From Gekko japonicus (lineage: Eukaryota): a stretch of DNA of 64,000 nucleotides. A model generated the notes under the pieces. It made no database searches. It saw only the letters and a program-made list of their open reading frames with translations, and was not told the DNA's origin. The DNA lies in assembly GCF_001447785.1 (NCBI RefSeq), contig NW_015165833.1:806608-870607 (forward strand), given 5' to 3'. A program made the translations under genes and the position numbers. Of this stretch, positions 1 to 59,243 are shown piece after piece. The stretch's first letter is position 1, and each line of letters starts with the position of its first letter.

Positions 1-254
1 ATAGGTCAACCATTCCATGGAGTGACCAGCTTTTGTGTGGATGAGGATGTCGCAACTCAGCAGATTCGCTGTGGCCATGATCTCTGCATCAGTTGCCCAG
101 ACTCCATCATGAGAGATNNNNNNNNNNNNNNNNNNNNNNNNNNNNNNNNNAGTAGTCCTGTAGTTTCACTGTCAAGTCAGTGTTCATGTGGTGGATGACT
201 TTATTTCTAAGAAGGGAGTGGTTGTCCTCTGATCCTGTCAGGATGTAGCTGATG
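1..254 (-). pseudogene. OTU-like cysteine protease coding fragment (transposon cargo)
   Basis: 253-151 translates to ISYILTGSEDNHSLLRNKVIHHMNTDLTVKLQDY; 117-1 translates to ISHDGVWATDAEIMATANLLSCDILIHTKAGHSMEWLTY. This matches the OTU pattern (helix after GDGNCxFRA, HxxLR, DGxWATDxEI..A.LL...I.I). The catalytic Cys loop would lie in the N gap 255-322; the two pieces are separated by a 33-N gap. Confidence 0.75.
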
Positions 255-322
255 NNNNNNNNNNNNNNNNNNNNNNNNNNNNNNNNNNNNNNNNNNNNNN
301 NNNNNNNNNNNNNNNNNNNNNN

Positions 323-449
323 CAGAACACTCCTCTTGCACCCTGGGGCCGTCATTCTACTCCGTGGCCTGTCATTCCAGTTCCAGAACACTCCTGCTGC
401 ACCCTGGGGCTGTCATTCCACTCCGTGGCCTGTCATCCCAGTTACAGAA
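323..449. repeat. 61-bp minisatellite inside the Ginger-like element
   Basis: Units start at 323, 384 and 445 (cagaacactcct..gcaccctgggg..gtcatt..actccgtggcctgtcat..cagtt); N gaps on both sides. Confidence 0.9.
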
Positions 450-624
450 NNNNNNNNNNNNNNNNNNNNNNNNNNNNNNNNNNNNNNNNNNNNNNNNNNN
501 NNNNNNNNNNNNNNNNNNNNNNNNNNNNNNNNNNNNNNNNNNNNNNNNNNNNNNNNNNNNNNNNNNNNNNNNNNNNNNNNNNNNNNNNNNNNNNNNNNNN
601 NNNNNNNNNNNNNNNNNNNNNNNN

Positions 625-1270
625 GGCAGCGCCTCTGGCAACAGAAGGTGGTTCTCTCTGGTTATTGGGGAAGTATCTCTCTTAGTAGGAAAAGACAGCA
701 GCCCCAGAAAGCAGGCCTGGGGGGTTAATCTGGCTTGCGGGGGTTATTCTAGCCTAGGCCAGAGTAATCCCGGGGTTTCTCTGGCCGGGGGGTGAATGGG
801 GGGGTTATTCTGGCCTAGGCTAGAGTAACCCCGGGTTAAACCCCTTTACAATCCAAACCTTCTTTTGGGTTGTAAAGGGCAAGCAGTTCCTTATTAAAAT
901 CTCCTTAAGAATAATGTCATCATGGATGCACTCCAAATAGAAGAGTGTGGGGCCAGAACCAGTGTCTGGACTGGGCCGTGCTCTATGTCCTGTGGCTCTC
1001 TGGGTCAGGTTATAAGTGGGGTGCCCTCGGTATTTGGGCTTCCCAAGAGTAAAAGGCAGCGCCTCTGGCAACAGAAGGTGGTTCTCTCTGGTTATTGGGG
1101 AAGTATCTTTCTTAGTAGGAAAAGACATCAGCCCCAGAAAGCAGACCTGGGGGGTTAATCTGGCCTGGGGGGGTTATTCTAGCCTAGGCCAGAGTAACCC
1201 CGGGGTTACTCTGGCCAGGGGGGGGAATGGGGGGGTTATTCTAGGCTAGGCCAGAGTAACCCCGGGGTTA
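625..1270. repeat. Direct duplication of the subterminal/TIR segment (period 430 bp)
   Basis: 625-837 closely matches 1055-1270 (ggcagcgcctctggcaacagaagg... through the palindromic GGGGTTA(T/C)TCT units). Confidence 0.9.
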
Positions 1271-2158
1271 CTCTGGCCGGGGGGTTAATCCGGCCTGTTA
1301 CACCGGGAAACCGGCTGCGGGGCTCTCCGGGCCTTCCCCCCACCTCAGCATTTCAGCGCCGGCCTGGAGGACCCGGCAGCAGGGCTCTTTGGGCCTCCCC
1401 CTGGCCCCAGCCCTTTGGCGCGGGGAGCTGGGGGCGGGGCTTGCCAGGCCACCATTTACGCCAGGTCCTGTGCTTCTGGAGCAGTGCTCCAGCGCTCTCC
1501 AGCCCCAAAAGACCCCTAACCACCAAATGAGCTCTTGCATGTTGAACAAGGAGTAGAGGAAGCTGCCAAATAGGAACGACAACAGTCCTGTCACGAATCC
1601 TTCCCATGGATGCGGGATGCATTCTTCTGGAGGTCTAGGCAGCTTCTGGAAGCAAACCAAAGCCAGGCTACATTATGGGGATCACAGTCGCTCTTTCCAC
1701 CTCCTTAGCAGCAGGCACTAAAAATCTAAAAAGAACTAGTTTAATTTAGAATAATGCGACGTGCTTCCCCATTGAGCACCTCACCCGTGAAGGGTGATTA
1801 CATTGCTTTTTTGCATGTATGAAATATCTGAAATACTGATGGGTCTTTGGGGCCTCTTGTCAGGTGGGGAGGGGAGAACAGCCGGAGTAATGGGGGGGGG
1901 TCCCCTTCATGGGTGAAGTATTGTCTATTTATTATTATCCAGGAATGGAGATGGAGGCAGAAGCAAATAGGTGTGTTCAAAGGAAAGCATGCAAAATGAA
2001 TCAGTGGTAAATGGAGGTAATCGCCATCTTATTAGTACGGTGGTGCTTGTCTTGAAGCAAGATGGGACATGCGCAGAACAGCAGATGTCTCTGGGTAAAT
2101 CAAACACTTAACCCAATTTAAAAGGCAGTTCTGCAAGACGAAATCCTTTGCAAATATA

Positions 2159-4444: not shown

Positions 4445-5015
4445 TTCTTTCTTTCTTTATTTTATTTCATTTCATTTATTTTATTTCATTTATACCCCGC
4501 CCTCCCCGCAAGCGGGCTCAGGGCGGCTTACATAGGCACAAAGTGCAATAGCGGCAAAATAGGTTAAAAACAGGTAAGACTAAAATTCACAACAAACAGG
4601 ATACATGGGAGACTATATTACACACTCCCCATTGCATATCAGGAAGGGGTCAGAAAAGGGGGGGGACGCCATGGGCCACGATGTTCCAGATGACCAATCG
4701 GCCCAACCCGGCGATACTGTTCTGCAGTTGCACGGTGGTGGTAGTGGCAGCGGCGACTCCTACTCAAAAGCCTGGCAGAAGAGCTCCATCTTGCAGGCCC
4801 TGCAGAACTGTAAGAGGTCCCGCAGGGCCCTGATCTCTTCCGGGAGCTCATTCCACCAGGTAGGAGCCACCACCGAAAAGGCCCTGGCCCTTGTGGCAGC
4901 AAGCCTGTCCTCTTTAGGGCCCGGGGTCACCAGGCAGTGTTGTGACCCCGACCTAAGTGCTCTTTGGGGCCTGTGTGTGGAAAGGCGGTCCCTCAGGTAT
5001 GCCGGACCCTGGCCA
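4445..5015 (-). mobile_element. L2 LINE 3' end (ORF2 C-terminus, 3' UTR and TAAA-type tail)
   Basis: ORF 4760-5023 contains YLRDRLS..RPQRALRS...RAFSVVAPTWWNELPEEIR...FCRACKMELFCQAF, a typical L2 C-terminus; ataccccgcc...cagggcggcttaca 3' motif and (TTTA)-rich tail. Confidence 0.9.
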
Positions 5016-5020
5016 TTCTT

Positions 5021-5165
5021 CATTTTATCCTCACAAGAGCGTTGGGAGGTGTGTTAGGTTGGGAGTGTCTGAATGGCCCAAGGTCACCCAGCAAGCCCCC
5101 ATGGCAGAACGGGGATTCAAATCTGGGTCCCCCAGATCCTAGTCTGATGCTTTAGCTGCTAGATG
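5021..5165 (-). mobile_element. tRNA-derived SINE (Squam3-like)
   Basis: cattttatcctcacaa...gcccaaggtcacccagc...ggggattcaaatctggg (B box), shared with other copies in the window. Confidence 0.75.
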
Positions 5166-5189
5166 TCACAAATTGCCAAATCTATGATC

Positions 5190-5370
5190 GAAGGTCCTGT
5201 AGTTCACACATTTTGTATACGTAAGGTCCAAGGTCCAATCCCTGGCATCTACTGTTAGAAAGATTTTCAGTAGCAGGCCTGGGAAAAACCTCTGTCTGCT
5301 AAGGACCTTGGAGAGCTTCTGACAGTCAGGGTAGACAATAGATTGACCACTCTATGTCAACTTTCTGTGT
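5190..5370 (+). mobile_element. Degenerate tRNA-derived SINE (same family as 21218-21428)
   Basis: aaggtccaaggtccaatccctggcatct...gaaaaacctctgtctg...ccttggagagc...cagtcagggtagacaata. Confidence 0.65.
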
Positions 5371-5994
5371 CTGTCTTTCAGGAAGGCTATTTATTTAGAT
5401 AATGTTAGAAAATTTTTAAAAGTCTGCTTCTGAATATCTCAGAAGTGTCCTGGGACTGCAGGAAGCACTTCTCAGAACAGATGCCTTGCCAGCCACTTCC
5501 CATTCTTAAGACACATGTGCTAGGTTAAAGTTTTGGGCAGTCTCTGGGTCTTTTCCTACTGGATCTTTTAGTAGGAAACATACCCATGGGCCCATTTCCA
5601 CCTCCTTTGTCTGGAGTATTTGAAATGCACCACTTAATATTGCTGGGCTCAACTGTGGATTTACAAAAGGGGTGTATTACCTGATCTTGAGCTACTGGGA
5701 GATTATTGAGTTAGGAGCCTGAGGACTTTTCCACAATTGCCAGCCAAATTTCTTTTGACCAAACTCCTTGCTCACATGTGGGTTGAGCCCCCTTGCTGGA
5801 TCTCCTCAGTGTTGCTGTTTAATGTCTGGAGCAAATGCTATGTAAAATGATTCACTTGTGCTACAGGATCTCAACTTCATCATGCCTTTTTAGAGACATT
5901 TCATAACTTCTGTGTGCAGTGCGCCTGTGGCCTCATTTGCACCTGCACAGAGACTGCTTAGTCTTCTCAACCCCCAGAGAAGAGGGCACATCTG

Positions 5995-6166
5995 GGGGTT
6001 AGGTAGGGCTGAAAGACCTCTTTTCAGAACTATCCTTGAGAGAACAGCTCTGACAGAACTATGGCTTGCCCAAGGTCATCCAGCAGCTGCAAGTGGAGGA
6101 GTGGGGAATCAAACCTGGTTCTCCCAGATTAGAGTCCATGCACTTAACCACTGCACCAAACTGGCC
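5995..6166 (-). mobile_element. tRNA-derived SINE, Squam3 long (gecko-type) form
   Basis: Reverse complement GCCAGTTTGGTGCAGTGGTTAAG...GGTTTGATTCCCCACTCCTCCAC, with the extra CTGTTCTCTCAAGGATAGTTC middle segment. Confidence 0.85.
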
Positions 6167-7434
6167 TAGTGGTCTGATTCAGTAATAGGCAGCTGCCTGT
6201 GACAGCAAATTGTGGAGCCATAAGACATACGGCCACCAATGGTATAAGTCTCAACACAAAATCTGAACATGTAGAACACTTTTTCCCCATTTAACAATGT
6301 GTCTTTTATGTTGGAGGTGTTCGTGTGCAGGCCACGGGAGTGTGTGGGGCAAACTGTAAGAAAAGAAACATGAACTCATACCTCCATAAGTAATATTTTT
6401 CTCACCATCAGACATGTTTGAACTGTTTGGGTGGCAGACGCCTCATCCATCAAATATTTGGCTTCTGTGATCACTACCTGAGAGCTGGATGTGAGGTGAT
6501 GCTTGTGCCATTATGCTCTTTTGCAGAATCTAGGACACGGACTCGCTATTATCAGTCTCCTTGGCAAACATCACTTACAGGACCTCACTGAGCTTTGTGC
6601 AGAGCAGAGATGCAAAAAGAGGGTCAGGGGAATCATGACGGTGTCTCCAGACTGTCATGGGCATTACATGAATCCTGTCTAGGAGAAATTAGGGTTCATC
6701 TCAGCATGGTAGCAAAGACAACGTTCCACTTTCTGTACATCTAAGCACATGCTTTCCAAAACTTCCTTTCTGCAAACTATTTCATTTCTAAGAATATAAA
6801 TGATATACATAGCTGCTTCCAAAACAATCTGCACATGTTTAAATTAAAAGCTAGTATCACCTGCTGCAACGGGGCAGAGGAAGACACACAAACGGAGTAA
6901 TTTTTTGCAATTAAATGTCCATTAAGCATAGCTAATTAGTCCAGGGGCTTCACATTTATTGAGTTAGCCAATCAGTGTTTCCCTTCTTGGACTGAAACAC
7001 AATCCCTCCCACCCCCCGTTCAAATTGCCCAGTCCTGTCTGAAGGATGAAGAGATGGAGGAAGAGAAGGCAAATTTGACTGAACAATAGAAAAACCTGAG
7101 TTTTCACCCTTAAGCATTTGGGAAATGGGGGTGAGTGGGGGACTGTTGTGAGTGTGTATCTGACAGGGGAGCCCTCCACGAAACACCACTTTAAAAATGT
7201 AGGAACATTTAGAGAGTTGAACATGTTCCAACATAAATACAAAACAATTCAGGTAAATAATAATTTGTGATTTTTTGGATCCTAATGAACAAAATAGTTT
7301 ACACACTTTAAGTTTTCTCAATAATAAACTGTTTTTTCAATAAACACAATGATCCTATTGTAATGATTCTCGAGTTCGCATGGTGGTGTATTTTCAAAAG
7401 GCTGCCTAGATCACGCCATGTCCCGCTGCCCCAC

Positions 7435-7475
7435 CTCTCTCTCTCTCTCTCTTTCACACACACACACACACACAC
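7435..7475. repeat. (CT)n(CA)n microsatellite
   Basis: Direct reading. Confidence 0.9.
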
Positions 7476-7562
7476 GAAGCTACCTTGAGTCAGCCTCTTT
7501 ATCTCTCCAGTGTAGTCCTGCCTCCTCTGACTGGGGCGAGGCTGTGGCTCAGTGTCCCAGGT

Positions 7563-7645
7563 TCATAAGAACATAATAAGAACATAAGAGAAGCCAATGT
7601 TGGATCGGGCCAATGGCCCATCTAGTCCAACACTCTGTCACACAG
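7563..7645 (-). mobile_element. CR1 LINE 3' tail fragment
   Basis: (CATAAGAA)n is the reverse complement of the (TTCTTATG)n CR1 tail; adjoining sequence matches 59283-59336. Confidence 0.85.
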
Positions 7646-8322
7646 GAGCTTCATGAATACAGTATCAGGAATCTGTGCACTGTAGTAGTGATGGTCTCCT
7701 TATCCACCAAGCACTTGGAACCGCTGTCTATGGTAGGTAAAATTCTCCTTTCCGCCATCTGGAAAAAAAGGGGGGGGGGGCTTAAGGCATGATGGTCTGT
7801 GTTCCTAAACAGCTCCTTGAAGTCAGGCCACAGCTGCAGAAGCAGCACGCTCTGCTTTGAGACGGGTGGGCCTTCCCAGTTTGAAAGGTCAGGACACGTA
7901 ACAAAGCTGGGCTATTACAGCTAATGCCGCTCTGCTCATGCCAGTTAATTTGCCATCCTGATGAAACTCTTAGAAGAAATAGCGATTAGAGCTCTCTCTC
8001 CCTGGACAGGCTAATTGCCAGAGCAGCTAAGAAGATGTTGGGCCAAGCCAGAGAAAGGCCAGAGTGCACCTTGATGAGAGTGTCAGTAATTTAGGGTTAA
8101 AGGGCTGAAAGAGCTGTTGACCCCCTGAAAATTATTGTGTTTGTAGGCAATCCCCCTGGCAAGAACAGCTCTCTCTCTCTCTTTCCCCCCTCTCACATGT
8201 TGAGTAATAGGTACTTGCCTGAAGGATCTACAGGCCTGTGTTTCTCAAAGATTGGCTTCTCCTGCTGCCTGAAGGATAATTCTCTGTTCAGATCTTGTAA
8301 TGCCTCAAGACTTGAAGGTTAA

Positions 8323-8540
8323 AGCCTGACCAGGATAGCACAAGCTTGATCTCATCAGATCTCAGAAGCTAAGCAGGGCCGACTCTGGCAAGTACTTGGA
8401 TGGGAGACCTCCTTGGAATACCAGCAGTTGGGAGGCGGGTGCAGGCTTTATTCAACTGTCTCTCTGAATATCCTCCAGCCCTCAGTACGGTTCATTCACC
8501 AGAGGCCGCCATGACTTCCAGGCGCACACACACGCACATA
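8323..8540 (+). mobile_element. 5S-derived SINE, subfamily C (longer 5S match, different body)
   Basis: gatctcatcagatctcagaagctaagcagggccgactctggcaagtacttggatgggagacctccttggaatacc follows 5S +31 to +105; ends gccatgacttccaggcgcacacacac. Confidence 0.85.
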
Positions 8541-8667
8541 TATAAAAAAATACAACCAGCTACAAGCATTCAAACCTATTGCAATAGAACTGCCACCTTT
8601 ACCCTGACTCCAGTACGATGCTGTTCCAGTTGGGAGGAGAGCAGACTGCTCTGTCATTTTTAGTTGA

Positions 8668-8831
8668 TGAGAGTGGTCTGGTGGATAAGCAGCGAGGCAT
8701 CAGCCTTGGAGCCAGGGGCTCACATCCCACTTTGGACAGTGACTGTGCGGCTCTGGAGAAGTCACCATTTCCCCACCTCTCACTGGGCCGCTTGGGTAGG
8801 GCGGGATATAAATCCCAAGTAAATAAATAAA
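8668..8831 (+). mobile_element. Short tRNA-derived SINE with L2-type (TAAA)n tail
   Basis: gtggtctggtggataag A-box-like head; gggcgggatataaat...aaataaataaa end. Confidence 0.6.
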
Positions 8832-8899
8832 TGTTAAAATTTTAGTTTAGCAAAGTAATTTTTTTTGCCCATCATGGAAGTGTGTCACTTGCTAATGTC

Positions 8900-9096
8900 T
8901 AATCCACAGCCAATTTAGGGTGACCTCATAGGGTTTTGGGTCAAGAGACATTCAGAGATGGTTTGCCTTTGCCTGCCTTGGCATAGCAATCCTTGACTTC
9001 CTTGGTGGTTTCCCATCTAATTACTAACCGGGGCTGACCCTGTTTAGCTTCTGAGATCTGACAAGATCAGGCCAGCCTGGGCCCTCCAGGCCAGGG
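8900..9096 (-). mobile_element. 5S-derived SINE, subfamily A
   Basis: Same head, box A, box C and RTE-like tail as 2474-2682. Confidence 0.85.
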
Positions 9097-9486
9097 AACT
9101 TAATCTATACAAAGCACTTTTCCTCATGATCCAGGTTTTGATAACCCTTACAGCAGTAGCAAACAATCTTGTTTCATGGATGTCTTGAAAGGCACAATTA
9201 CAGATATGATCAATCTGGAAATTTGTCTAACTCTCATTCCAGGAAGCAGATCCTGCTCCACCAATTGCCCATCACTGATGGAAACAAGGAGCAAGTATCA
9301 GGAAACGCAGTATCTGTTTGGACTCACACTTGGGGCAAATTCTCTACACAATGGCTATTGGACCACTGATGGGACCCAGCAGGGGTTGTTGCATTATTGT
9401 GTCTCCAAGCTCAAACTTACTGTCTCCCTTTGCACAAGATGGCCCACCCCTCAGACAGCAGGAGCTGCCGGCAACATCCCTTTGCC

Positions 9487-9592
9487 TGACTCATGCAGTT
9501 GATGGAGAGATGGCGCTCCAGTGGATTCATTTTACTCTTATTGTGGAGCCTTCACTGTAACCTTTAGAACCAGGTGACTCATCTCTGACTCA
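9487..9592. promoter_or_regulatory. Cluster of three AP-1 sites (TGACTCA), candidate enhancer
   Basis: Exact TGACTCA at 9487, 9575 and 9586 in non-repeat sequence. Confidence 0.4.
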
Positions 9593-11572
9593 GTTTTGAA
9601 CAGGATTATATGATTTTTTTAATTGGAAAGGCTCTATGCACACATTCCCTTTGTGTGCTTGTCATTTGGATCCTCTCTGTGCTTGGATATAAGCTCCCCC
9701 CCCCCCCGCGCGTGTGTGTGTGGTAAAGTGCTGTCAAGTCACTTTGGACACATGGTGACCCAAGAATTACTGCCCTTCAAAACACTAGATTTTCCTGGTT
9801 ATTTTTGCTGTAACAGCCTTATGTGGCTACTCCTCTGGCAATGCATTTTGGTTTTCAAATCCTTGAAGCATTAATTTATCAACATACAAAGCTATCTTAT
9901 CGGGAGTCAGGCCAGTGACCCATCGAGTCAAATGTTCTCTACACAGACTGGCAGCATCTCTATGGGATCTTTTTAATGGGACATACTGAGGAATGAGCCT
10001 TGGTTCTTTGGTGCACAAAATATGTGCTCAACCACTGATCCATAGACTCTTCTCTATTTATTTAGAATTTACACAGAGAATTCTAACCCCTTGCTAACTA
10101 TTCAGGAGAAAGTGAGGAAGCATGCAGTCCCTTTGATACGGACTCAATAGGCCATATGCACAATTTTCTCTTGGCGAGTCTCTATGTATGTCATCAGGGT
10201 GGCATTGGGGATGGAAAGCAGGCACCTACNNNNNNNNNNNNNNNNNNNNNNNNNNNNNNNNNNNNNNNNNNNNNNNNNNAAATAACGTTAGTTGAGTTCC
10301 ATTAGCTCAACCCCGCAAAATTTACATGCAGTTTCCCATCTGCTGTGTTGAACAGAATCCCATCCTGGAGTTTGTAGTCAATAAAACAGATGGAAGTTTT
10401 CTTTTTTAAAACCCATGGGGGACAAAAAAGAAGAAAGAGGCTCGGAACAGAAATGTGGGGGTGTTTCAAGCAGCCCGGTGCCCTCGCGCTTATTCACTGG
10501 GAGCCTTGGGGAAAAGGAGAAGTGTTTACTTCTCTGGCAAAAGAACTTCCCATTGTGGAAATTCACTTGCTTCTGAGTTTGGGGAGTCTTCTTACTTGTG
10601 GGGCCCAGTGCAAAAGGGCGGAGGGATGTTTCAAGTACAGATATGGAGAGCGCCTCAGAAAAAGAGCCACTTTTGGAGGGCTCTGTGAGAAAAGAGGAAC
10701 CGCTGGGGTTTGGAGTAGGGGAATGCAAACAAAACCAAACCAGATTCTGATTTAGTCCTTTTGTGGCTTTAAATGCTCATCAGATTCTTAAATATGAGAA
10801 TTAAAGCTAGTCATATTTATTCACCAATCTGGCGGTCATTTTCATTTGTATCAATGGGGGTCATATTTCCAGGTATAACTTTCCACTTCGAAAGTGATCA
10901 AATTCTCAGCATTTGTACACCCCCCCCACATGGGTCCTCCCTGCCAAACTGCAGACAATTAGAACAGAAAATCCCCCTTTAGAGACAATTAAAATTCTCC
11001 CTTGCAGAATGGGAACAGGGAGACACAGTGAATGAAGGAGTGAGTTTCTCCTCCTTTCCTGGGAACCTCAAAATGCGAACAGTACCCATGCTTATATGGA
11101 ATCAGAGGGCCCTCCCAAAGCCCCTGAGAGGATGCAGTGATGAGCAGAAAATGAGAACACTGTGCACAGAAATGCCAATCTGGACAATCCTGTTTGACAG
11201 GAAGACAGGATAACTGTTTTGGATGGATAAGGTCCCTGTCATGCACATTTCTGCAAAGTCACCTTTCTCCAGGCTGCCCCTTCCACTGTCTGTGGAAATG
11301 AAACCACACAACAAGGGAATGGCATAATTGTCAGACTTGAAGTTTTCTCACTGATCCCAAATGCTGGAAATAATTCAGATTTTTGAGCCTTTAGAGTATT
11401 TACAAGTGGGAGCAATTTGGGTCACTTAGTAAAGTTCCATTTCTATTTTTTGTACAAATTGCCAGATGAAGATGTGGAAGGTAAACCTTGTAGGATAAGA
11501 TCTAGGCTAAAATCAGATCCAAGCATGAGACAGAGGATGCAGAGCAGAGGTAGGTCCAGATCTGGTCTAGAA

Positions 11573-11716
11573 TCATAAGAGAACATAAGAAAAGCCCTCC
11601 TGGATCAGACCAGTGGTACCTCCAGCATCCTGTCTCAGAGCAGCCTGAGCCAACTGGTTCCTCCGGAGGGCCAACAACAGGGCATAGAGGCCAAGGCTTT
11701 CCCCCTGTTGTTGCCT
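11573..11716 (-). mobile_element. CR1 3' UTR/tail fragment
   Basis: cataagagaacataagaaaagccctcctggatcagacca... Confidence 0.8.
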
Positions 11717-12034
11717 CATCAAGGCAAACAGGAAAACAAAAACAAAACAAGTATCTGTGGGTGGGGGGAGAGGAGGGGACAGATAGGTCTGGTTGTACAA
11801 ACTGCAGAGGAGTTGGTAAATATGACACTAACTTCAAATAGCCAGAATGTTAGTGGTACTCTGTGTTAATCCAGTCCAGTTGAACCCTGAAGAATGTGGC
11901 TGTGAATAGCCTGAAGAAATCCTGCTATGTTCCCTGGGAGGGAAAAAAAAGCCTAAACATGTTGGTGTGGCTATGAATTCTCCTCAGAGAAAGCAAACAG
12001 AGGGGCCAAGAGGTGAAGTTCAGGGGCTAATAGA

Positions 12035-12660
12035 CAAAATAAGAACTGACAAATTAAGGACTGACAGGTCCAGATGGCATGTATCTGAAGACTCTTAAGG
12101 ACCTCAGATGCAAAACTGCTGATATCCTAAACAAAGGCTGCTGCCACACACGCTAAGTAATCCACTTTCAATCCACTTTCAGTGCACTTTCAAAGTGGAG
12201 TTTTACTGTGTGAACTGGCAAAATCCACTTTGAAAGTGCACTGAAAGTGGATTGAAAGTGGATTACTTAGCCTGTGTGGCAGCAGCTAAAGATATGCAAC
12301 TGGTCACAAAAATCAGCCTCCATTCCAGAAGACTAGAAGGTACTAAATGTAATACGAACACCTCTCTTTTTTAAAAAGGGTTCCCCAAGAAGATTCAGGA
12401 AATTATACACCACTTAGCCTAACATCTCTGGTGGGTAAACTGTTGGGAGCTGCCATGGGCTGCCCCATCCTAACCCTGGCTGTGGTGCTGGTGTGGCAAT
12501 GCCAGGGCAGTGCCAGTAGTCAAGAGCTTCAAAAAGATCTCTTTGATGACAGTGCATTCAATGGGCTTCATTGTAAGTGTAAAGTGATGTACAGTGGAGC
12601 AAAAAAAATGCTAACTAGAAATAGACATTCTGAGGATAAGCCATTTGAGCTCATTGGAAG
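12035..12660 (+). mobile_element. Degenerate CR1 reverse transcriptase fragment, interrupted by a MITE
   Basis: Decayed motifs GPDG (ggtccagatggc), PEDW (ccagaagactag), FKKG..D.GNY.P.SLTS..GKL and KCKVM..GAK. Confidence 0.75.
12136..12287. mobile_element. Palindromic MITE, PIF/Harbinger-like (152 bp)
   Basis: Near-perfect inverted arms of about 68 bp starting GGCTGCTGCCACACA and ending TGTGTGGCAGCAGCT; 3-bp flanks AAA/AAA; internal ATCCACTTTCA repeats. Confidence 0.9.
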
Positions 12661-12711
12661 AAGGGTAGAATTAAAATATCAGTTTTTTAAAAAAATATTT
12701 TATGTTTTTAA

Positions 12712-12912
12712 AGCCCTGACCTGGATGGCCCAGGCTAGCCTGATCTTGTTGGATCTCATAAGCTAAGCAGTAATCAGCCCTGGATGGGAGACCACTAAGG
12801 GGCACTACGCAGGGGCAGGCAATGGCAAACCACCCTTGTTTGGTCTCTTGCCTTGAAAACCCTACAGTGTCACCACAAATAAGCTGTAGCTTGATGGCAC
12901 TCTCCACCACCA
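12712..12912 (+). mobile_element. 5S-derived SINE, subfamily A
   Basis: agccctgacctggatggcccaggctagcctgatc...gctaagcag...ggatgggagaccac...ggcaatggcaaaccac...gaaaacccta...ttgatggcactctccaccacc. Confidence 0.9.
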
Positions 12913-13584
12913 TGTTTTTGAACACATCTTCTCCTCAGCAGCTGCCACAGGGAGTGTGCATTTGTGATGCAGATCTAGCAACATGTTGTATTACTTATGA
13001 TGTTTAGGAATGTGCATTCTGAATCCAAACAGGATCTCCTCAATTCTTTAAAAAAATTAATATAGTATTTTGAATGTAAGTAATCTAAATTCCAAACATC
13101 TTTGGGAATAGCACTTATTCTAGTGCCTCGCTGTTTGCTTTTCATCACAGTAGAGGGCAAGGGGGGAAATGTAGAGAGGTGGTAAAGGGAGGATTTGACT
13201 AAGTATATAATCTACTTGACAAGGGTGCCTTCCAGCCAGAAGCAGCAGCAGATGTTCCTGCTAAAGAGAATCATTTTGATTGTACTTCATTTTGAAGACT
13301 GTCTATACAGCACAATGGCTTTCTGACAGAAACCATCCAACTTACCAAAAGCAAAATCAATCAGCAAACAAAACTACCGAAACACCACAGAAAGGTTCCA
13401 AGACACCAAGAAGGGCAAGTTGCCCTGGAGACCAAAATAACACAATATTTTCTTATTTGCAGGATTGCCAGTAAATCTAAATTTTAAGATTTAAAATATA
13501 GAATAAGGCCCACAAGAGCTGTGTAATACTGTGCAATTACAGTGTAATACTATTTTACATCAAGGGCATTAATTCATCTCTGTA

Positions 13585-13780
13585 TGTGTGTTAAGTACCA
13601 TCAAGTCACAGCAGACTTACAGCAACCCCAGCAAGGGGCCTTCAAGGCAAGTGAGAAGCAGAGGCGGTTTGCCCTGGCCTTCCCCTGCAGGACCTTCCTC
13701 AGTAGTCTCCCATCCAAGCACCAATCCTGCTTAACTTCTGAGATCTGATGAGATCAAGCTATACCATGCCACCTTCCCCT
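13585..13780 (-). mobile_element. 5S-derived SINE, subfamily B (10-bp promoter deletion)
   Basis: Reverse complement GGGAAGGTGGCATGGTATAG head; GTTAAGCAGGATTGG joined directly to TGCTTGGATGGGAGAC. Confidence 0.9.
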
Positions 13781-13884
13781 CCCCAATCATCTTTTCAGTG
13801 CTGTGGAAATCTATCTACCAACTGCTAACATAATTCCTTCATCACTATCTGATATCTTTTAAAAATGGCAATCAGGGGAATGTA

Positions 13885-14075
13885 GCAGCCCTAATAGCCC
13901 AGACGATCCTGATTTTGTCAGAGCTTGAAAGCTAAGCAGGGCTTGTATTTGGACTGGAGACCATCAAGGGAGCCTCTGCCGAGGAAGGCAATAGCAATCC
14001 TCCGGTGCACAACTCTTGCCTTGATCGAACTTCATGAGGTCACCATGTCTCAGTTGCGACTTGATGGTACACTTT
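13885..14075 (+). mobile_element. 5S-derived SINE with short box A-C spacing
   Basis: gctaagcagggcttgtatttggactggagacc...gaggaaggcaatagcaa...cagttgcgacttgatggtac. Confidence 0.8.
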
Positions 14076-14489
14076 ACCTTAATCAGGAGAATGATCTGGA
14101 AAAGTTGCAAGGAGAGGAGAAATGAAGGAAGCTTGCAGCTTCATAGAGCCTACAGGAAAAGAAAAAATGCAGAAGAGTTTCTTGCAGCTGAAGTTCATGG
14201 AGGCAGTTATTCTATTCACGTGGAATGCTGGAAAATCTACATATAGCTCAGCCAGTAGGTAGCGTATTAAAGCAAGCCAGAGAAAAGAGGCAATGGCTGA
14301 CAGGGACTGTGATATAATATAAATAGTTACTGCCAGTGAAAAGAGGTGAGAGGAAAAAGCCCAAATATAATGGAGAACAGACGCACTTAGAGAATCATCC
14401 TGTTTCTGTGTACAGTGTTTTCATTTTCTGTCAATCATTGCAGGGAAGAGATTTTTCTTATATTCCCCAAGAGACATCCAACTGCTGAA

Positions 14490-14625
14490 GGAAAGTTTCA
14501 GAGGATAGCCATGTTGTTCTGCAGTAGAACGAAGCTCTGACTCTTGAAACCTTATTCCCCCCCCCCCCCCAATTTTGTTGGTATTGAAGGTGTCCCTGGA
14601 CTGGAAGCTAGCTGTTCAACTGCAG
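14490..14625. mobile_element. Degenerate Penelope-like terminal fragment
   Basis: tagccatgttgttctgcagtagaac...gactcttgaaaccttat...aattttgttggt.ttgaaggtg..ctggact, related to 49923-50111. Confidence 0.55.
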
Positions 14626-14817
14626 AATGGGTGGGGACAGAGGCAGAGGCCACATTCCCCTTATTAAGTTAGGCAACACACATGCTGGGGACTGGAACAA
14701 ATAATCTTCATTGTACACCCTGGAAGGCAGGCAGGCAGGCAGGCACATAGGCTGATTCAGGGCAGATAGAGGATAGAGTCAAATCCCCACCCCTCAAAAA
14801 AAAAACCCAGACCCAAA

Positions 14818-15178
14818 TGTTGGCAGAGTAATTAACACAGCAAAGGTGCACAATATATTTAAAGTTTAGATAAAGGTTTATTTAGGAATTAACATACTTG
14901 ATAGGAAAGAGGAGAGAGAGAGATTTGATAGGAAAGAGGAGAGAGAGAGATAGCATCCTTACTACATCACCAGCTGAGAGGGCAAAACTAAGTGTGGAAC
15001 TTCCGAGAAGAAGCAGGATATTGCCCTAAGAGCAGTAATCTGGAGACAGACAAGGAATGACACTCAGTGGGAGACAAGGTGCTGCTGACCACACGATCCT
15101 ATCTAATTGTTTTCTTGCTGCCCCCTGCAGGGTCTTCTTCTCTTCTTCCTTGTACACCAGACATTGCCTATTCCAACA
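14818..15178 (-). mobile_element. Solo LTR (361 bp), Copia/Gypsy-type termini
   Basis: TGTTGG...CCAACA termini; exact 5-bp TSD CCAAA (14813-14817 and 15179-15183); AATAAA on the minus strand near 14877; internal tandem duplication of about 27 bp. Confidence 0.85.
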
Positions 15179-15906
15179 CCAAATAAGATGAGGTTTGAGA
15201 GAGAGATCCATGGTGAGGTTGAATTTGAGATCTCTCTCTGAAAGATAAGTGAGGATCAAATTGCTGAGCAGTCTGGATGCCTTTGATTTCTATTCAAAGC
15301 AGCGGTGCCATTTCGCCAATACAAATAGAGCTGCTGTCAGCTCTGTAGCAAAGAAAAGAGAAAAGAAAAAGACAGTCAAGCTTCCATCCTCCGGTATATA
15401 TAATTCTATTTTGGTCATGGACTCCCCTGAACATTCCAACATGTTCCAAAATCAGTTCGCTCTCTGATCTGTCAGTCAGAGGGTCTCCCTATCCACTGGT
15501 TGCTGTGCCTGAGTCCTGCCTCCAACATTCTAAACAGTTTGCTGTTCCTCTCCCTCCCACAGCCAGTCAGAACACAGAGGTCATTTGCATATGTGGCCTG
15601 ATTCACCTTTGCCTCAGAACACAGAGGTCAGGTCGTTTGCATATGCGGCCTCACTGGCTTTTCCCTCTAACATTCTAAAGAGTTTGCTGTTGATGTTCTG
15701 AGGTAAAATAAATGTCCCCTTAGTGTCTGTTGGGGGAAACCATGGTTGCAAATCTCCAGGTGAGGGCTAAAGATCACTCAGAATTACAACTGCTTTCCAG
15801 ATGGCAGAGATCAGTTCCCCTGGTGAAAATGGTGGACTCTGTGTCCTTATATCCTGCTGAGATGGCCCCTGTATGACAGCCAATGTGACGTAGCAGTCAG
15901 GGCTTC

Positions 15907-16482
15907 AGCTATTAAAACTGATGTCCAAATGATCAGTTCTCTTGGAGACAATGGCTGCTTTGGGCAGTAGATTCTATGGCATTATACCCTGCTGAGGTCC
16001 CTCCCTACCCCAAATCCTGCCCTCTACCCCTCAAATCTACAGATATGTTCCAACCCAGAGTTGGCAACTGTGTAATCGGCTATGGAACTACTTTCCAGAC
16101 CCTTGGAACCAGGAAAACATGGCACTGGAGGAGGTGCTTTTCTACCTTAGCTGTGACTGCATAGCCCCAAATTAACATAAGCCAATCTCTAGGCGGCACC
16201 TGGAGATCTCCAGCTATTAAAACTGATGTTCAGATGACCAAGATCAGTTCTCCTGGAGACAACGGCTGCTTTGGGCAGTGGATTCTATAGCATTATACCC
16301 TACTGAGGTCCCTCCCCACTCCAAATCCTGCCCTCCCCAGGCTCTACTCCTCAAATCTACAGGTATTTCCCAACCTAGAGTTGGCAACCGTGTAATCAGC
16401 TATGGAACTACTTTCCAGACCCTTGGAACCCAGAAAATGTGGCACAGGAGGAGGTGCTTTTCTACCTTAGCTGCCACTGCAT
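15907..16482. repeat. Local tandem duplication (period about 300 bp) of a TAGGGTTGCCA-type MITE plus flank
   Basis: 15907-16163 and 16211-16482 share cagctattaaaactgatgt...gttggcaac.gtgtaatc.gctatggaactactttccagacccttggaacc...ttctaccttagctg..actgcata. Confidence 0.9.
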
Positions 16483-16996
16483 AACACCCCCCTCCCCCTC
16501 AAAAAATAAGTCAGAGGTGGAGGGAACCATATCTGTTACCATGAGGCTGTCCTCCCATTCTACCCACGTGGGGCAGCAAAATGACTTGAGACAGCCCTGC
16601 CTTATAGCTAAGCAGAAGGAAAGAAACATGGCGTGCCTCCCTCCATTTTCTGCTTCCCTCTGCCGCCCCACCAGCCACAGTCGGGACACTCATCTGGAGC
16701 TTCCTTCTAGATCCCGTTGTATTACTTCCCACGACGAGCATTACTCCTAGTTCATATATAAAGAAAGAAAGGGGGTGGTGTGGTCTTTAAAAAACAAAAA
16801 ACAAAACAGGGGTGTGAAGTTGAGGAAAGCTAAGCCCTGCCTCCTCCCACATGTGATTCTGGTGATACATGAGACAGTTTTCTTCCATCTTTGTTCTCTT
16901 CTGTTATCAGAGAGCATCTTCCAACTAGGAGCACAACAAGGGAAGGGAAATGAAAGGAAGGTTCAGCATCTCCCATCCATGTGTTTTAACTTTACA

Positions 16997-17196
16997 GCCA
17001 GTTTGGTGTTGAGAGCCAGTTTGGTGTAGTGGTTAAGAACAGCAGACTCTAATCTGGAGAACTGGGTTTTCCCCACTCCTCCACATGATGCCAACTGGGG
17101 GACCTTGGGTCAGTCACAATTCTCTCAGAGCTGTTCTCCTCAAGAGCAGTTCACTTAGAGCTCACTCAGCTCCACCTATCTCACAGGGTGTCTGTT
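16997..17196 (+). mobile_element. Squam3 long-form tRNA SINE with duplicated 5' tip
   Basis: agccagtttggtgttgagagccagtttggtgtagtggttaag...ctgttctcctcaagagcagttc. Confidence 0.85.
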
Positions 17197-18059
17197 TGGT
17201 GTAAAATGAAATAAAGTGATGTGGAAATGTGTTTCTTATTAAAATGAATAAAGATTTTTTTAAAAAATCCAAAAAGAAAATGAAGACAAATAACTAAAGA
17301 ACAAAACAAACAAAACAACGCAGATAATATTTCCTTGCATCTCCTCAGTGGTGGGTGAAGTTTGTTCTGCTATTAAGTTGATCATTTGCCAAACCTACCA
17401 AATACAGGAGGGGGAGCTGTGCCACCCTGGTTCCAGTAGCACTGCTCATCATCATAGTTATTTCCATAGGCAATTAGTCTATTCTCACAAGTCCGGAGAC
17501 TAGAATTTGGCCCTCTGCATAAGTTAATATTCTGTCTTGCAAATTTCCCTTTTTTGCCTTTATTCCCACTGACACTTCAAAAATATTAGATAAACACCAG
17601 ATTGTTAGGAGATAATTAACAAAGAACTGTCTCTATTCTTGGGCACCAGAGAGACTGCAGGAGATATACATTCACCACCCACATCTCTCTCCTCCCAGCA
17701 CATCCCCCCCCCCACAATATTCCACACTGAAGAACTGCCGGCTGAAGCCACTTTTTCTAACTGAAGGAGATATGAATATCTAAAACTCCATTCCTCAGTA
17801 AATAATATATCAAGGTGCTCGGCGTTTAATCTAGATGTGGGTACAAGAGTCCAGGGAGACTGTGACCTCTTGGCCTTTGAGTGTCCATGTGAGGGAGGGG
17901 CGTAACACTAAACACACAGGGAAAGTTCTTAAAAATGCAGGCGGCTTTTAATCCGGAACACTCTGGCACTAGGCCTCTGAAGATGGGCTGTCCAGGCCAA
18001 ATGGCCCCTACAAGTTTGATAATGTCAATGAGAAGCTGACAGTGCTGTGAGCCGTATTT

Positions 18060-18607
18060 TATTTACTTTGTTTATTTCATTTCTGCCCTGCCTTCCTACC
18101 CAACAGGGACCCAAAGTGGCTTACCTCATTTTTCTGTTCTCCATTTTATCCTCACAAAAACTCAGTGATGTAGGCTAGGCTGAGAGTGTGACTACCCCAA
18201 GATCAGCCAACAAGCTTCCATGAGAGTGGGGATTTGAACCTCATTTGCAGACTGGACGGTCTGTAGTTCGGCAGTTCAAGACCCGAGTGCCGTGTGACAG
18301 AGTGAGCTCCCGTCTCTGGCCCCAGCTCCTGCCAACCTAGCAGTTCGAAAGCAAGAAATTGCAAGTAGATAAATAGGTACCTCTTTGGTGGGAAGGTAAC
18401 AGTGTTCTGTGTGCCTCGGTGTTTAGTCATGCCGGCCACATGACCACGGAAACGTCTTCGGACAGCGCTGGCTCTTTGGCTTGGAAACGGAGATGAGCAC
18501 TGCCCCCTAGAGTCGGATTCGACTGGCTTTCGAGCAAGGGAACCTTTACCTTTACCTTACTCCAGCTCCTAATCCCACATTCTAACCACTATTGTACACT
18601 GGCTCTC
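18060..18607 (-). mobile_element. Squam3-like SINE split by a Sauria SINE
   Basis: Tail and body at 18060-18241; head (ctaaccactattgtacactggctctc) at 18561-18607. Confidence 0.8.
18246..18560 (+). mobile_element. Sauria SINE (5'-truncated)
   Basis: cagttcgaaagcaagaaattgcaagtagataaataggtacc...catgccggccacatgacc...gagtcggattcgactgg...(ACCTTT)n tail. Confidence 0.95.
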
Positions 18608-18908
18608 AGAGGCCCACCTGGCCTCTCTCTCTGCTTCCTCCCCCAACCCTGTCATCTTCCTTTCCATTTCCCATTCCTGTCCATGGTGGTCCCATCTTGA
18701 GGAAGCAGGAGAAAGGGGGCCTGGAGTAGGGTTTCAGCACCCAGGGGAGCAGCATGCTCTGCGACAAGGTGAGGCCTCAGGGGCTAAGCTGCTTTGTCCA
18801 CATTTGAATTACATTGACACCATGCTACAGCCTGCCACACAGTTCAGAACAGAGGAAAGGTTAGCCTGAAGGTACCTCCACCATGTTCTTGCCTCAACCA
18901 CTCTCCAA

Positions 18909-19402
18909 AAGCCCTGACTTGGATAGCCCAGGCTAGCCTGATCTCTTCAGTTTGGTGTAGTGGTTAAGAGCGTGGACTCTAAGCTGGGAGAACTGGGTTT
19001 GATTCCCCACTTCTCCACAAGCAGCTGCTGGGTGACCTTGGGCAAGCCACAGTTCTCTCAGAGCTGTTCTTTCAAGAGCAGTCCTTGAAAGAGATCTCTC
19101 AACCCCACCTACCTCAAAGGGTGCCTGCTGTGGGGAGGGGAAGGGAATGAGATTGTAAGGCACTCCGAGACTCCAAGTGAAGAGCGGGGCATAAATCCGA
19201 TCACCTCCTCCTCCTCCTCTTCTTCAGATCTCGGAAGCTAAGCAAGGTCAGCTTTGGTCAGTATTTGGATGGGAGACCACCAAGGAACACCAGGGTCACT
19301 ATGCAGAGGCAGGCAATGGCAAACCACCTCTGTTTCTCTCTTGCCCTGAAAACCCTCAGGGGTTGCCATAAGTTGGCTGTGACTTGACAGCACTTTCCAC
19401 CA
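18909..19402 (+). mobile_element. 5S-derived SINE subfamily A, split by a Squam3 insertion
   Basis: Head 18909-18950; resumes atctcggaagctaagc at 19228 and runs to gacttgacagcactttccaccat. Confidence 0.9.
18951..19220 (+). mobile_element. Squam3 long-form tRNA SINE (nested)
   Basis: tttggtgtagtggttaagagcg...gggtttgattccccac; (CCT)n tail; flanked by TCTTCAG direct repeats (18944-18950 and 19221-19227). Confidence 0.9.
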
Positions 19403-20228
19403 TTCTCCAAATGGGTGATTAATTTCCCCAGAGCCTCATTTCTTCTCTTCCTTCATATTGACGTAGACTGGGTCTGCTGCATCGGGGGTGGGGTAGGGGC
19501 TAGAACTTCTGTAGTGTGATGCAAAAAGCTCCAGCATTGGGAGTCTGGATAAAGACAAACATGACAGAAACCCAATAGACTACCTCCCAAGGACCACAGC
19601 AGGCAGCTGCCCATTCTACAGGGACTAATTTCCTCGCCTGACAGACCAGGGACAATTAATGTCCATCATTCCCAGGCAGCCCATAATCCCAAGAGCTGGT
19701 TTGAAATGTCTTGGGAGAAAGGAAGGATGAAAGGTGATTTCCTGCTTCCGCAGAAAAGGGAATGAAAACTAATGTGAAGGATTGCACAGCACTGGCAGGA
19801 GTAATAAACACATCCGTGCCTTCCCAGTCAAAATGAGCTCCAAAGAGTCATTGGCGAGCCAATGAGACAGGACCTTGAAGGAGCCCTTTGGAGCCAATAG
19901 GGGCCCCCAACAGGTGACAGACATGGGCTCCCTTGAAGGTAGTGGCTGAAATGGGCCATACTTATTCATGTGCACCTTCCTACCCTTTTCAAGGCAGGAG
20001 ACATGATGAAATCTGACAAAATCCACAGTTCTACCATACGCTCAATTAATTGACACGTGGGAGGCACAAAATGGATGTGGTGGTCACAGCAGCGCTCTTG
20101 ATGCTCCCCAACAAGCCCATCCATCCTAATTCCATTGATCTCCAGTTCTTTCCAACAGCATTTGATTCCTCAACCTTTGGGGTGCTATGCATTCCACTGA
20201 AATTAATAGAAGCTTAGGGAGTGTTTTG

Positions 20229-21217: not shown

Positions 21218-21428
21218 TGGGGAGAGGCTGTGGCTCAGTAGAAGGGCCACTGCTTTGCATGCAGAAGGTCCCAGTTTCAATCCCTGGCATCTCTTGTTTA
21301 AAAGACCAGGCAGCAGGTGATGTGAAAGACCTCTTCCTGAGACCCTGAAGAGCTGCTGTCAGTCTTAGGCAATACTGACTTCGATGGACCAAGGGTCTGC
21401 TTCAGTACAAAGCAAATTTATGTGTTCA
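21218..21428 (+). mobile_element. tRNA(Ala)-like SINE with CR1-like tail (possibly Squam2-type)
   Basis: gctgtggctcagtaga...tttgcatgcagaaggtcccagtttcaatccctggcatctc head; gatggaccaagggtctg..tcagta tail. Confidence 0.8.
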
Positions 21429-58226: not shown

Positions 58227-59243
58227 TTGGTGGAGCATAAAGGACAAGTCCTTTTATGGATCAAAAACTGGCTAATTAATAGAAAACAGAGAGTGAGTAT
58301 AAATGAACAATTTTCTCAGTGGAGGGTGGTAAGCAGTGGGGTACCGCAGGGATCAGTACGTGGTCCACTGCTTTTTAACTTGTTCATTAATGATTTGGAG
58401 ATGGGAGTAAGCAGTGAAGTGGCTAAATTTGCAGATGATACGAAGTTGATCAGGGTGGTGAAAACCAGTGAGGATTGTGAGGCACTCCAAAGGGATCTGT
58501 CAAAGATGGGCAACTGGGCGTCAACATGGCAATTGGGGTTCAATGTGGCCAAGTGCAAGGTGATGCACATTGGAGCCAAAAATCCTAAATATAAATACAC
58601 GTTGATGGGGTCTGAACTGGCAGAGACTGATCAGGAGAGAGATCTTGGTGTTGTAGTAGATAACTCACTGAAAATGTCGAGACAGTGTGTGACTGCAATA
58701 AAGAAGGCCAATGCTATGCTGGGGATTATTAGGAAGGGTATTGAAAACAGATCAGCCAATATAATAATGCCCCTATATAAATCAATGGTGAGACCTCATT
58801 TGGAATACTGTGTGCAGTTCTGGGCACCACACCTTAAAAAAGATATTATAGCTTTGGAAAAAGTGCAGAAAAGGGCAACTCAAATGATAAAAGGGTTGGA
58901 ACACTTTCCCTATGAGGAAAGGTTAAAGCGCTTAGGGCTCTTTAGCTTGGAGAAAAGACGACTGAGGGGTGACATGATCGAGGTTTATAAGATTATGCAT
59001 GGGAAAGAGCAGGTAGAGAAAGAGGTACTTTTCTCCCTTTCTCACAATACAAGAACCCGTGGGCACTCCATGAAATTGCTGAGCGGTCGGGTTAGAACGG
59101 ATAAAAGGAAGTACTTCTTCACCCAAAGAGTGATTAACACATGGAATTCACTGCCACAGGAAGTGGTGGGTGCTACAAGCATGGACGGCTTCAAAAGGGA
59201 ATTAGATAAGCATATGGAGCAGAGGTCCATCAGTGGCTATTAG
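58227..59243 (+). CDS. CR1 LINE ORF2 reverse transcriptase, C-terminal 338 codons (5'-truncated, frame open)
   Basis: SGVPQGSV.GPLLFNLFINDL, KFADDTKL, KCKVMHIG, RPHLEYCVQFW, FSLEKRRLRGDMI, WNSLPQEVV; no internal stop. Confidence 0.97.
   Translation: MVEHKGQVLLWIKNWLINRKQRVSINEQFSQWRVVSSGVPQGSVRGPLLFNLFINDLEMGVSSEVAKFADDTKLIRVVKTSEDCEALQRDLSKMGNWASTWQLGFNVAKCKVMHIGAKNPKYKYTLMGSELAETDQERDLGVVVDNSLKMSRQCVTAIKKANAMLGIIRKGIENRSANIIMPLYKSMVRPHLEYCVQFWAPHLKKDIIALEKVQKRATQMIKGLEHFPYEERLKRLGLFSLEKRRLRGDMIEVYKIMHGKEQVEKEVLFSLSHNTRTRGHSMKLLSGRVRTDKRKYFFTQRVINTWNSLPQEVVGATSMDGFKRELDKHMEQRSISGY

Follow-up and report, generated by a model that had tools for sequence, protein, structure and literature searches.

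At the left edge of the 64,000 nucleotides of Gekko japonicus DNA analysed here (contig NW_015165833.1, positions 806,608 to 870,607 of the forward strand; hereafter the window), positions 1-1306 probably belong to a non-autonomous Ginger1-type DNA transposon and make up its 5' portion, if the element is oriented by its transposase gene, which is read from the minus strand. Ginger1 elements are defined by TGTNR ends, 4-bp target-site duplications (TSDs), terminal inverted repeats (TIRs) of 40-270 bp and a transposase resembling the Gypsy integrase, with a C-terminal OTU or Ulp1 domain (Bao, Kapitonov, Jurka 2010, PMC2836005). At this locus we observed a transposon terminus, an adjoining CCGG, membership in a repeated family, homology to OTU domains and the absence of an integrase. 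The features, in the order in which they lie and with plus or minus for the strand, are as follows.

1-117, minus: OTU domain fragment of 39 amino acids (aa), which runs off the left edge of the window; matches residues 573-611 of protein P0088.
118-150: unread bases (N run) between the two OTU peptides.
152-253, minus: OTU domain fragment of 34 aa; matches residues 526-559 of P0088.
255-322: N run between the 34-aa peptide and the 61-bp repeats.
323-449: tandem repeat of 61 bp in two copies at 90% identity, with stops in all minus-strand frames; non-coding interior.
450-624: N run between the 61-bp repeats and the terminal region.
625-839, plus: direct copy of 1055-1266 at 94% identity, made of subterminal palindromic units and lacking the last ~32 bp, including the terminus.
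840-990: spacer which departs from the sequence of the family on both sides; moderately repeated.
991-1302, plus: terminal segment, contiguous in the family, with 62-bp palindromic units at 1166-1227 and 1228-1289 and a TGTAA-type terminus.
1303-1306: CCGG tetramer, one copy of the presumed 4-bp target-site duplication.
1307-1517: different repeat, rich in GC (71%) and with a boundary of its own at 1517, a read depth of 16-114 and internal direct units of ~60 bp.

The initial annotation had placed a transposon terminus directly against CCGG, and this is what we find: the plus strand reads CCTGTTACA followed by CCGG over 1294-1306, with the end of the element at 1302 and the tetramer at 1303-1306. 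Seen from the minus strand the same junction is CCGG followed by TGTAACAGG, and the terminal 20-mer on the plus strand (1283-1302) is GGTTAATCCGGCCTGTTACA. The visible end has the TGTNR form of Ginger1, as TGTAA on the minus strand (TTACA on the plus strand, 1298-1302). A second copy of the terminus (in inverted orientation TGTAACAGGCC... on the plus strand) was not found within the 64-kb window; the other end of the element would lie to the left of position 1.

Raw reads of the same species (run X18, sampled at ~0.8x) and contigs of three further organisms, here called B, C and D, were aligned to positions 625-2100. Most reads from other copies still match the window through 1306 and then diverge, with 148 reads continuing differently behind 1306 and 93 behind 1307 (~240 together). 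The consensus agreement of these diverging reads is low (0.44 and 0.58, respectively), which indicates many different flanks right behind the CCGG. The repeat thus stops immediately after TGTTACA plus CCGG, and CCGG is common to most copies, as CCGG-specific insertion predicts. The tetramer, seen on one flank, is accordingly a presumed TSD; among Ginger1 TSDs, CCGG accounts for 75% and CCGT/ACGG for 24% (Bao et al. 2010, PMC2836005).

The nested GC palindromes that had been described inside this end are indeed present, and occupy the last ~140 bp up to 1302. Perfect 30-nt palindromes lie at 1187-1216 and 1249-1278 and near-palindromes of 32 nt at 1170-1201 and 1232-1263, all within palindromic units of ~62 bp which recur with starts at 736, 797, 1166 and 1228. 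Such 30-mer palindromes are not expected by chance (no matches in 100 shuffles), and 1160-1302, folded as single-stranded DNA, reaches -46 kcal/mol (z = -8.5).

The same terminal architecture was encountered in public metagenome contigs, in which a scan for the terminal 20-mer returned 11 matches; the same scan of viral contigs gave none. Four of the 11 (L002, L004, L008 and L009) were discarded as chance matches, having neither palindromic units nor further similarity. The other seven (L001, L003, L005, L006, L007, L010 and L011), which belong to two GenBank sets (MDSQ01... and MOXH01...) and have ~40% GC, share GGGGGTTAATCTGGCCTGTTACA, with 23 of its 24 bases as in the window. Homologous palindromic units extend over 61-164 bp at 71-78% identity to the window in L003, L005, L006 and L011, while L001 and L010 match only ~25 bp around the terminus and L007 has no extended match. 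Behind TGTTACA the seven sequences are mutually unrelated, and the next four bases are CCGG, CCGG, CAGG, CCTG, CCCC, GTGG and ACTG: CCGG itself follows the terminus in L003 and L006, and two further contigs are one base off. In these seven contigs we found no transposase by tblastn, no Pfam domain in the open reading frames and no second end. These contigs fix the position of the terminus, and they show that the terminal architecture is conserved in another, unrelated source.

About 1.05-1.3 kb inward from the end at 1302 lie the two OTU peptides, both free of stops. That they carry an OTU signature, as first proposed, holds, since the two align in order to one OTU domain in many proteins, with summed tblastn E-values of 1e-12 to 1e-19. 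Six residues that are nearly invariant in the alignment of the relatives (W7, T9, E12, A17, D23 and W36) are all present in the 39-aa peptide. The HMMER comparison with the Pfam OTU model, which had been suggested as a check, gave a weak result: the 39-aa peptide had a sub-threshold match (E 0.0046; 17.9 bits, where the cut-off is 23.3), and the 34-aa peptide, scanned alone, had none. A PDB search with the 39-aa peptide returned no solved OTU chain at E<=10, and a protein atlas search gave weak OTU/otubain leads for one peptide and no lead for the other.

The two pieces are separated by 34 nt, from the last codon of the 34-aa peptide to the first codon of the 39-aa peptide, across the N run 118-150, whereas the homologous spacing in most relatives is 13 residues (39 nt). 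If the N run has exactly the length given, the two peptides are out of frame by one base; either that length is an estimate, or the window copy has a small frameshifting deletion. In the relatives the Pfam OTU domain reaches 10 residues further upstream than the 34-aa peptide, so that the start of the domain and the catalytic Cys motif fall inside the N run 255-322. None of the catalytic residues can be read in the window, the Cys region being in 255-322 and the His region to the left of position 1.

Relatives of the 39-aa peptide were collected by an exhaustive phmmer search of 1.84 billion representative sequences, which gave 67 proteins at E<=1e-3; together with cluster members, 77 relatives were scanned against Pfam. 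OTU was recognised in 51 of the 77, SH3_Tf2-1 in six, Integrase_H2C2 in three and rve in one, and the last three are the only recurrent domains besides OTU. Rep or helicase domains were found in none of the 77. In P0074 the order of domains is rve, SH3_Tf2-1, OTU, and a word search that started from this protein led to full-length proteins of 616-663 aa. Three of them, P0088 (640 aa), P0090 and P0183, have the order H2C2, rve, SH3_Tf2-1, OTU, and the window peptides agree with their OTU domains at 68-79% identity. Towards its N terminus P0088 is similar to the integrases of Ty3 and foamy virus (E 5e-29 and 3e-26); its OTU domain scores no more than 27-28 bits against human OTUD1 and OTUD3. Sponge proteins from the same word search have Ulp1 and PHD in place of OTU, so that OTU, Ulp1 and PHD among the relatives make up exactly the repertoire of Ginger1 transposases (Bao et al. 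2010, PMC2836005).

Identities to the 34-aa and 39-aa peptides, respectively, are 74% and 74% for P0088 and 68% and 79% for P0183, both from unlabelled assemblies, 62% and 64% for P0092 from the sponge Oopsacas, and 50% and 63% for P0091 from the mollusc Nucella. The closest named relative is P0194 (76% and 82%), a gene model of the frog Anomaloglossus baeobatrachus with the source name CD226 antigen, which combines immunoglobulin domains with a Ginger1-type OTU; the gene model has probably swallowed a transposon fragment.

It had been stated at the outset that grouping of the OTU peptides with Helentron cargo or with a host OTUD gene would speak against Ginger1. The closest proteins are instead fusions of integrase and OTU, and by homology the two peptides are fragments of a single OTU of the kind found in Ginger1 transposases, and neither Helitron cargo nor a host OTUD.

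A complete Ginger1 transposase would also contain an integrase, for which the initial annotation saw no room between this end and the OTU pieces. This is borne out. When twelve relatives, five of which carry integrase domains, were compared by tblastn with the whole 64-kb window, only the two OTU pieces matched, and no remnant of H2C2, rve or SH3 was detected; the copy in the window is for this reason regarded as non-autonomous. No coding similarity was found by tblastn upstream of the OTU pieces, beyond position 322, where 323-449 contains stops and bears no likeness to a transposase. The relatives have ~515 codons before their OTU domain, which cannot be held by the at most ~980 bp available here between OTU and terminus, and the readable parts of this interval consist of tandem repeats and palindromes. 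The reading direction of the OTU points away from the end at 1302, as expected of a C-terminal domain if 1302 is the 5' end and the integrase has been deleted. Together these comparisons suggest descent from an integrase-bearing element by deletion, the breakpoint of which would fall in the N run 255-322.

The aligned reads also show that the terminal region is repeated. Mean summed depth is 0.83 in the single-copy flank (1525-2100), 38-305 over 625-1224 and 303-338 over 1225-1324, and within the terminal segment 991-1302 it ranges from 70 to 340. The excess over 625-1306 is ~50-400-fold, which corresponds to roughly 50-400 copies, counting reads at >=85% likeness. Among the 1,867 aligned reads, which include those from other repeats on the stretch, 177 are >=99% identical and 655 are 95-99% identical, and there are at least five positions in the window copy at which nearly all reads carry another base. 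These figures suggest a moderately young family, from whose majority the window copy differs by a few per cent; this is an estimate, not a measurement.

Recent activity of a Ginger derivative had initially been argued from intact CpGs in the terminal repeat. That basis for youth fails, as observed/expected CpG ratios are 0.24-0.31 in the terminal blocks (0.24-0.30 in 1074-1302) against 0.27 in the rest of the window, and thus equal the background; the few CpGs of the terminal blocks are located in the palindrome cores.

Organisms B and C share the flank at ~93-95% identity, and in both of them the terminal ~80 bp occur in many contigs, which indicates that more than one species has this family or a close relative of it. 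The boundary at 1306 is the same in organism C. It should be mentioned that 991-1073 (83 bp) reaches contig depths of 5,000-20,000 in organisms B and C, where the matches end at 1073. In the species of the window, 991-1073 is contiguous with the Ginger1-type terminal region, and a contig of organism D spans 997-1149; 991-1073 may be a piece shared between two repeat families.

The interior of the element is a mosaic. Behind 839, 117 reads of other copies leave the sequence of the window with an agreement of 0.93, and their continuation contains the terminal 20-mer in inverted orientation; 192 reads join the window sequence before 987/991, coming from another shared sequence. The family has 991-1302 in one piece; 625-839 repeats the subterminal part in truncated form, and 840-990, which has a 16-nt inverted repeat of its own (842-857 / 864-879), is foreign to both.

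An account of how such a copy could have arisen begins with a full Ginger1 element, which encodes a DDE transposase of the Gypsy-integrase kind with a C-terminal OTU cysteine protease and inserts at CCGG with a 4-bp duplication. An internal deletion would have removed the zinc finger, the DDE core and the SH3/GPY-F parts, leaving the OTU part and keeping ~1 kb of non-coding, palindrome-rich subterminal DNA, and the window copy would then have been rearranged further by the duplication spaced by 430 bp and by the foreign spacer. Copies of this kind would depend for their movement on a master with an integrase, which would act in trans by recognising their terminal motif and subterminal repeats; CCGG would be their target-site duplication, and the OTU remnant would be a passenger without a function of its own.

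Several points weigh against this interpretation. Only a single end lies inside the window, and the inverted repeat and the duplicated target site would both need the end beyond it; what supports the Ginger1 type proposed at the start is the TGTAA end, the CCGG and an OTU nearest to integrase-OTU proteins. The Pfam scores of the two peptides alone stay below threshold, even the closest proteins, which are from unlabelled assemblies or a frog gene model, reach no more than 68-82% identity, and no integrase-bearing master from the species of the window was seen. Moreover, the repeat depth was established over 625-2100, the OTU part (1-254) being outside that stretch. Finally, the duplication of 625-839 and 1055-1266, the breaks in the reads at 839 and 987/991 and the N runs mean that terminus and OTU may come from two adjacent partial copies.

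This last point leads to the alternative that deserves most attention, namely two neighbouring partial Ginger1 copies, or one copy and a solo terminal fragment, in which the copy with the OTU would be truncated and end near 839 and 991-1302 would be a separate, 5'-truncated fragment. The 94% identity of the two direct copies, the left one lacking the terminal ~32 bp, and the reads that break away at 839 (117) or join at 987/991 (192) are what this arrangement would produce. However, both copies have the same orientation and lie 151 bp apart, which fits a local duplication inside one element as well, and the left limits of the duplication are hidden by the N runs. We consider two copies unlikely, and whether there is one copy or two, the OTU part and the terminal part are both Ginger1-derived.

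Much less probable, to the point of being a marginal alternative, is an exon of a host or domesticated OTU gene that happens to lie beside an unrelated small transposon end. Both OTU pieces that can be read are free of stops, the closest named OTU is in the frog gene model P0194 (CD226 antigen), and the copy-number data cover 625-2100 and not the OTU part 1-254, all of which a host gene would accommodate. Yet the nearest match to the OTU is the C-terminal domain of integrase-OTU transposases, no solved OTU protein was retrieved with the 39-aa peptide, and even P0088 in full length reaches only 27-28 bits with OTUD1/OTUD3. In addition, the frame shifts by one base over 118-150, provided that the N run has its exact length, and what lies upstream of the OTU is a 61-bp tandem repeat with stops. 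Two further readings concern the terminus itself. Helitrons have TC...CTRR ends, make no TSD and sit between A and T, while Helentrons have short asymmetric terminal repeats and insert between T and T. If 1302 were such an end, with OTU as its cargo, the GC-rich palindromes near it would be rolling-circle terminator hairpins; here, however, the palindromic unit is repeated at least four times, in place of one hairpin 10-20 bp inside the terminus, most copies have CCGG next to their TGTAA/TTACA end, and Rep/helicase is absent from the 77 OTU relatives and, by tblastn, from the window, the relatives with another recurrent domain carrying integrase parts. OTU domains can occur in animal Helitrons (Bao et al. 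2010, PMC2836005), and we nevertheless regard a Helitron or Helentron end as extremely improbable. The same very low probability applies to the end of a Gypsy-type long terminal repeat (LTR), likewise TGT...ACA, beside an unrelated OTU fragment. Ginger1 ends do resemble Gypsy LTR ends (Bao et al. 2010, PMC2836005) and retroelement debris occurs elsewhere in the window, for example a reverse transcriptase fragment at 58227-59240, but in most copies the end is followed by CCGG, palindromic units are arrayed through the subterminal region, tblastn showed no gag/pol nearby, and the adjoining OTU is of the Ginger1 kind.

Returning to the non-autonomous Ginger1 element, a further-reaching proposal is that an amniote lineage received Ginger1 by horizontal transfer, that the transposon moved there until very recently or moves still, and that a deletion derivative which kept the OTU spread preferentially. 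The hundreds of copies, the many reads at >=95% identity, the ends in at least two related organisms, the near-identical 24-mer in the metagenome contigs and the frog OTU could be read in this way; we put it forward as a speculation that we consider unlikely.

The GC-rich repeat at 1307-1517 lies outside the element and is probably the target of the Ginger1-type insertion, which would have taken place at a CCGG-like tetramer. Copies of this repeat in organism B extend further left than 1305, with sequence of their own, so that in the window the element appears to sit inside it. Loose read ends are seen behind 1517, and the repeat is present in ~20-140 copies in the species of the window and in far more in two related organisms. 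Elsewhere in the window, 8322-8436 is a full-length match to 5S rRNA (42.3 bits against an Rfam threshold of 38), probably a 5S-derived short interspersed element (SINE), and 21224-21294 is tRNA-like at 32 bits, just above the Rfam threshold, and may be the head of a tRNA-derived SINE or a tRNA pseudogene. The retroelement fragment at 58227-59240 is a 338-aa open frame which matches RVT_1 (E 2e-15). Direct repeats of 75 bp at 2605-2679 and 2792-2866 (75% identity, separated by 187 bp) resemble adjacent fragments of SINE type, near which a CA/TA microsatellite occupies 2160-2240.

In 2010 Ginger1 was known only from invertebrates and the lancelet (Bao et al. 2010, PMC2836005). What has since been described in alligator, turtle, coelacanth and frog is only old relics, the group having been unreported from sarcopterygians until then (Frith 2022, PMC9004415). 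Knowledge of Ginger1 in amniotes comes mainly from the domesticated GIN genes and from such ancient relics. A literature search, Repbase and Dfam lying outside it, found no report of Ginger1 transposons in a squamate. A sharp-ended family of several hundred copies would show that Ginger1 stayed, or became, mobile in a squamate, and would offer a system in which to ask how CCGG targets are recognised by a transposase of the integrase type, and why OTU proteases accompany it. The locus described here is an ordinary rearranged copy, partly unread, that provides supporting detail rather than a new finding, and it adds little to the squamate case because it is cut by the edge of the window, incompletely read and rearranged. 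Its own additions are that the OTU relatives carry Gypsy-type integrase and none of them Rep/helicase, that CCGG is common across copies, and that elements of an unrelated source have kept both the terminal motif and the palindromic units.

Compared with known systems, the element has in common with OTU-carrying Helitrons and Helentrons an OTU cysteine-protease domain on a DNA transposon and GC palindromes near the end, and differs from them in its terminal sequence, its CCGG context and the lack of Rep/helicase among its OTU relatives. With GIN1 and GIN2, host genes domesticated from Ginger1 transposases, it shares descent from such transposases; these genes keep the integrase part and are single-copy (Bao et al. 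2010, PMC2836005), whereas here the integrase is gone and the sequence is a multi-copy repeat with a transposon terminus. From the Ginger1 elements with OTU-type transposases, such as the Hydra and Aplysia families (PMC2836005), the window copy is set apart by the missing integrase, by having only one end in the window, by subterminal DNA that forms an array of ~62-bp palindromic units, and by its squamate host. It nevertheless resembles them in its TGTNR end, in the CCGG adjoining that end and in an OTU domain that is homologous to the C-terminal OTU of integrase-OTU transposases and is read away from the 5' end.

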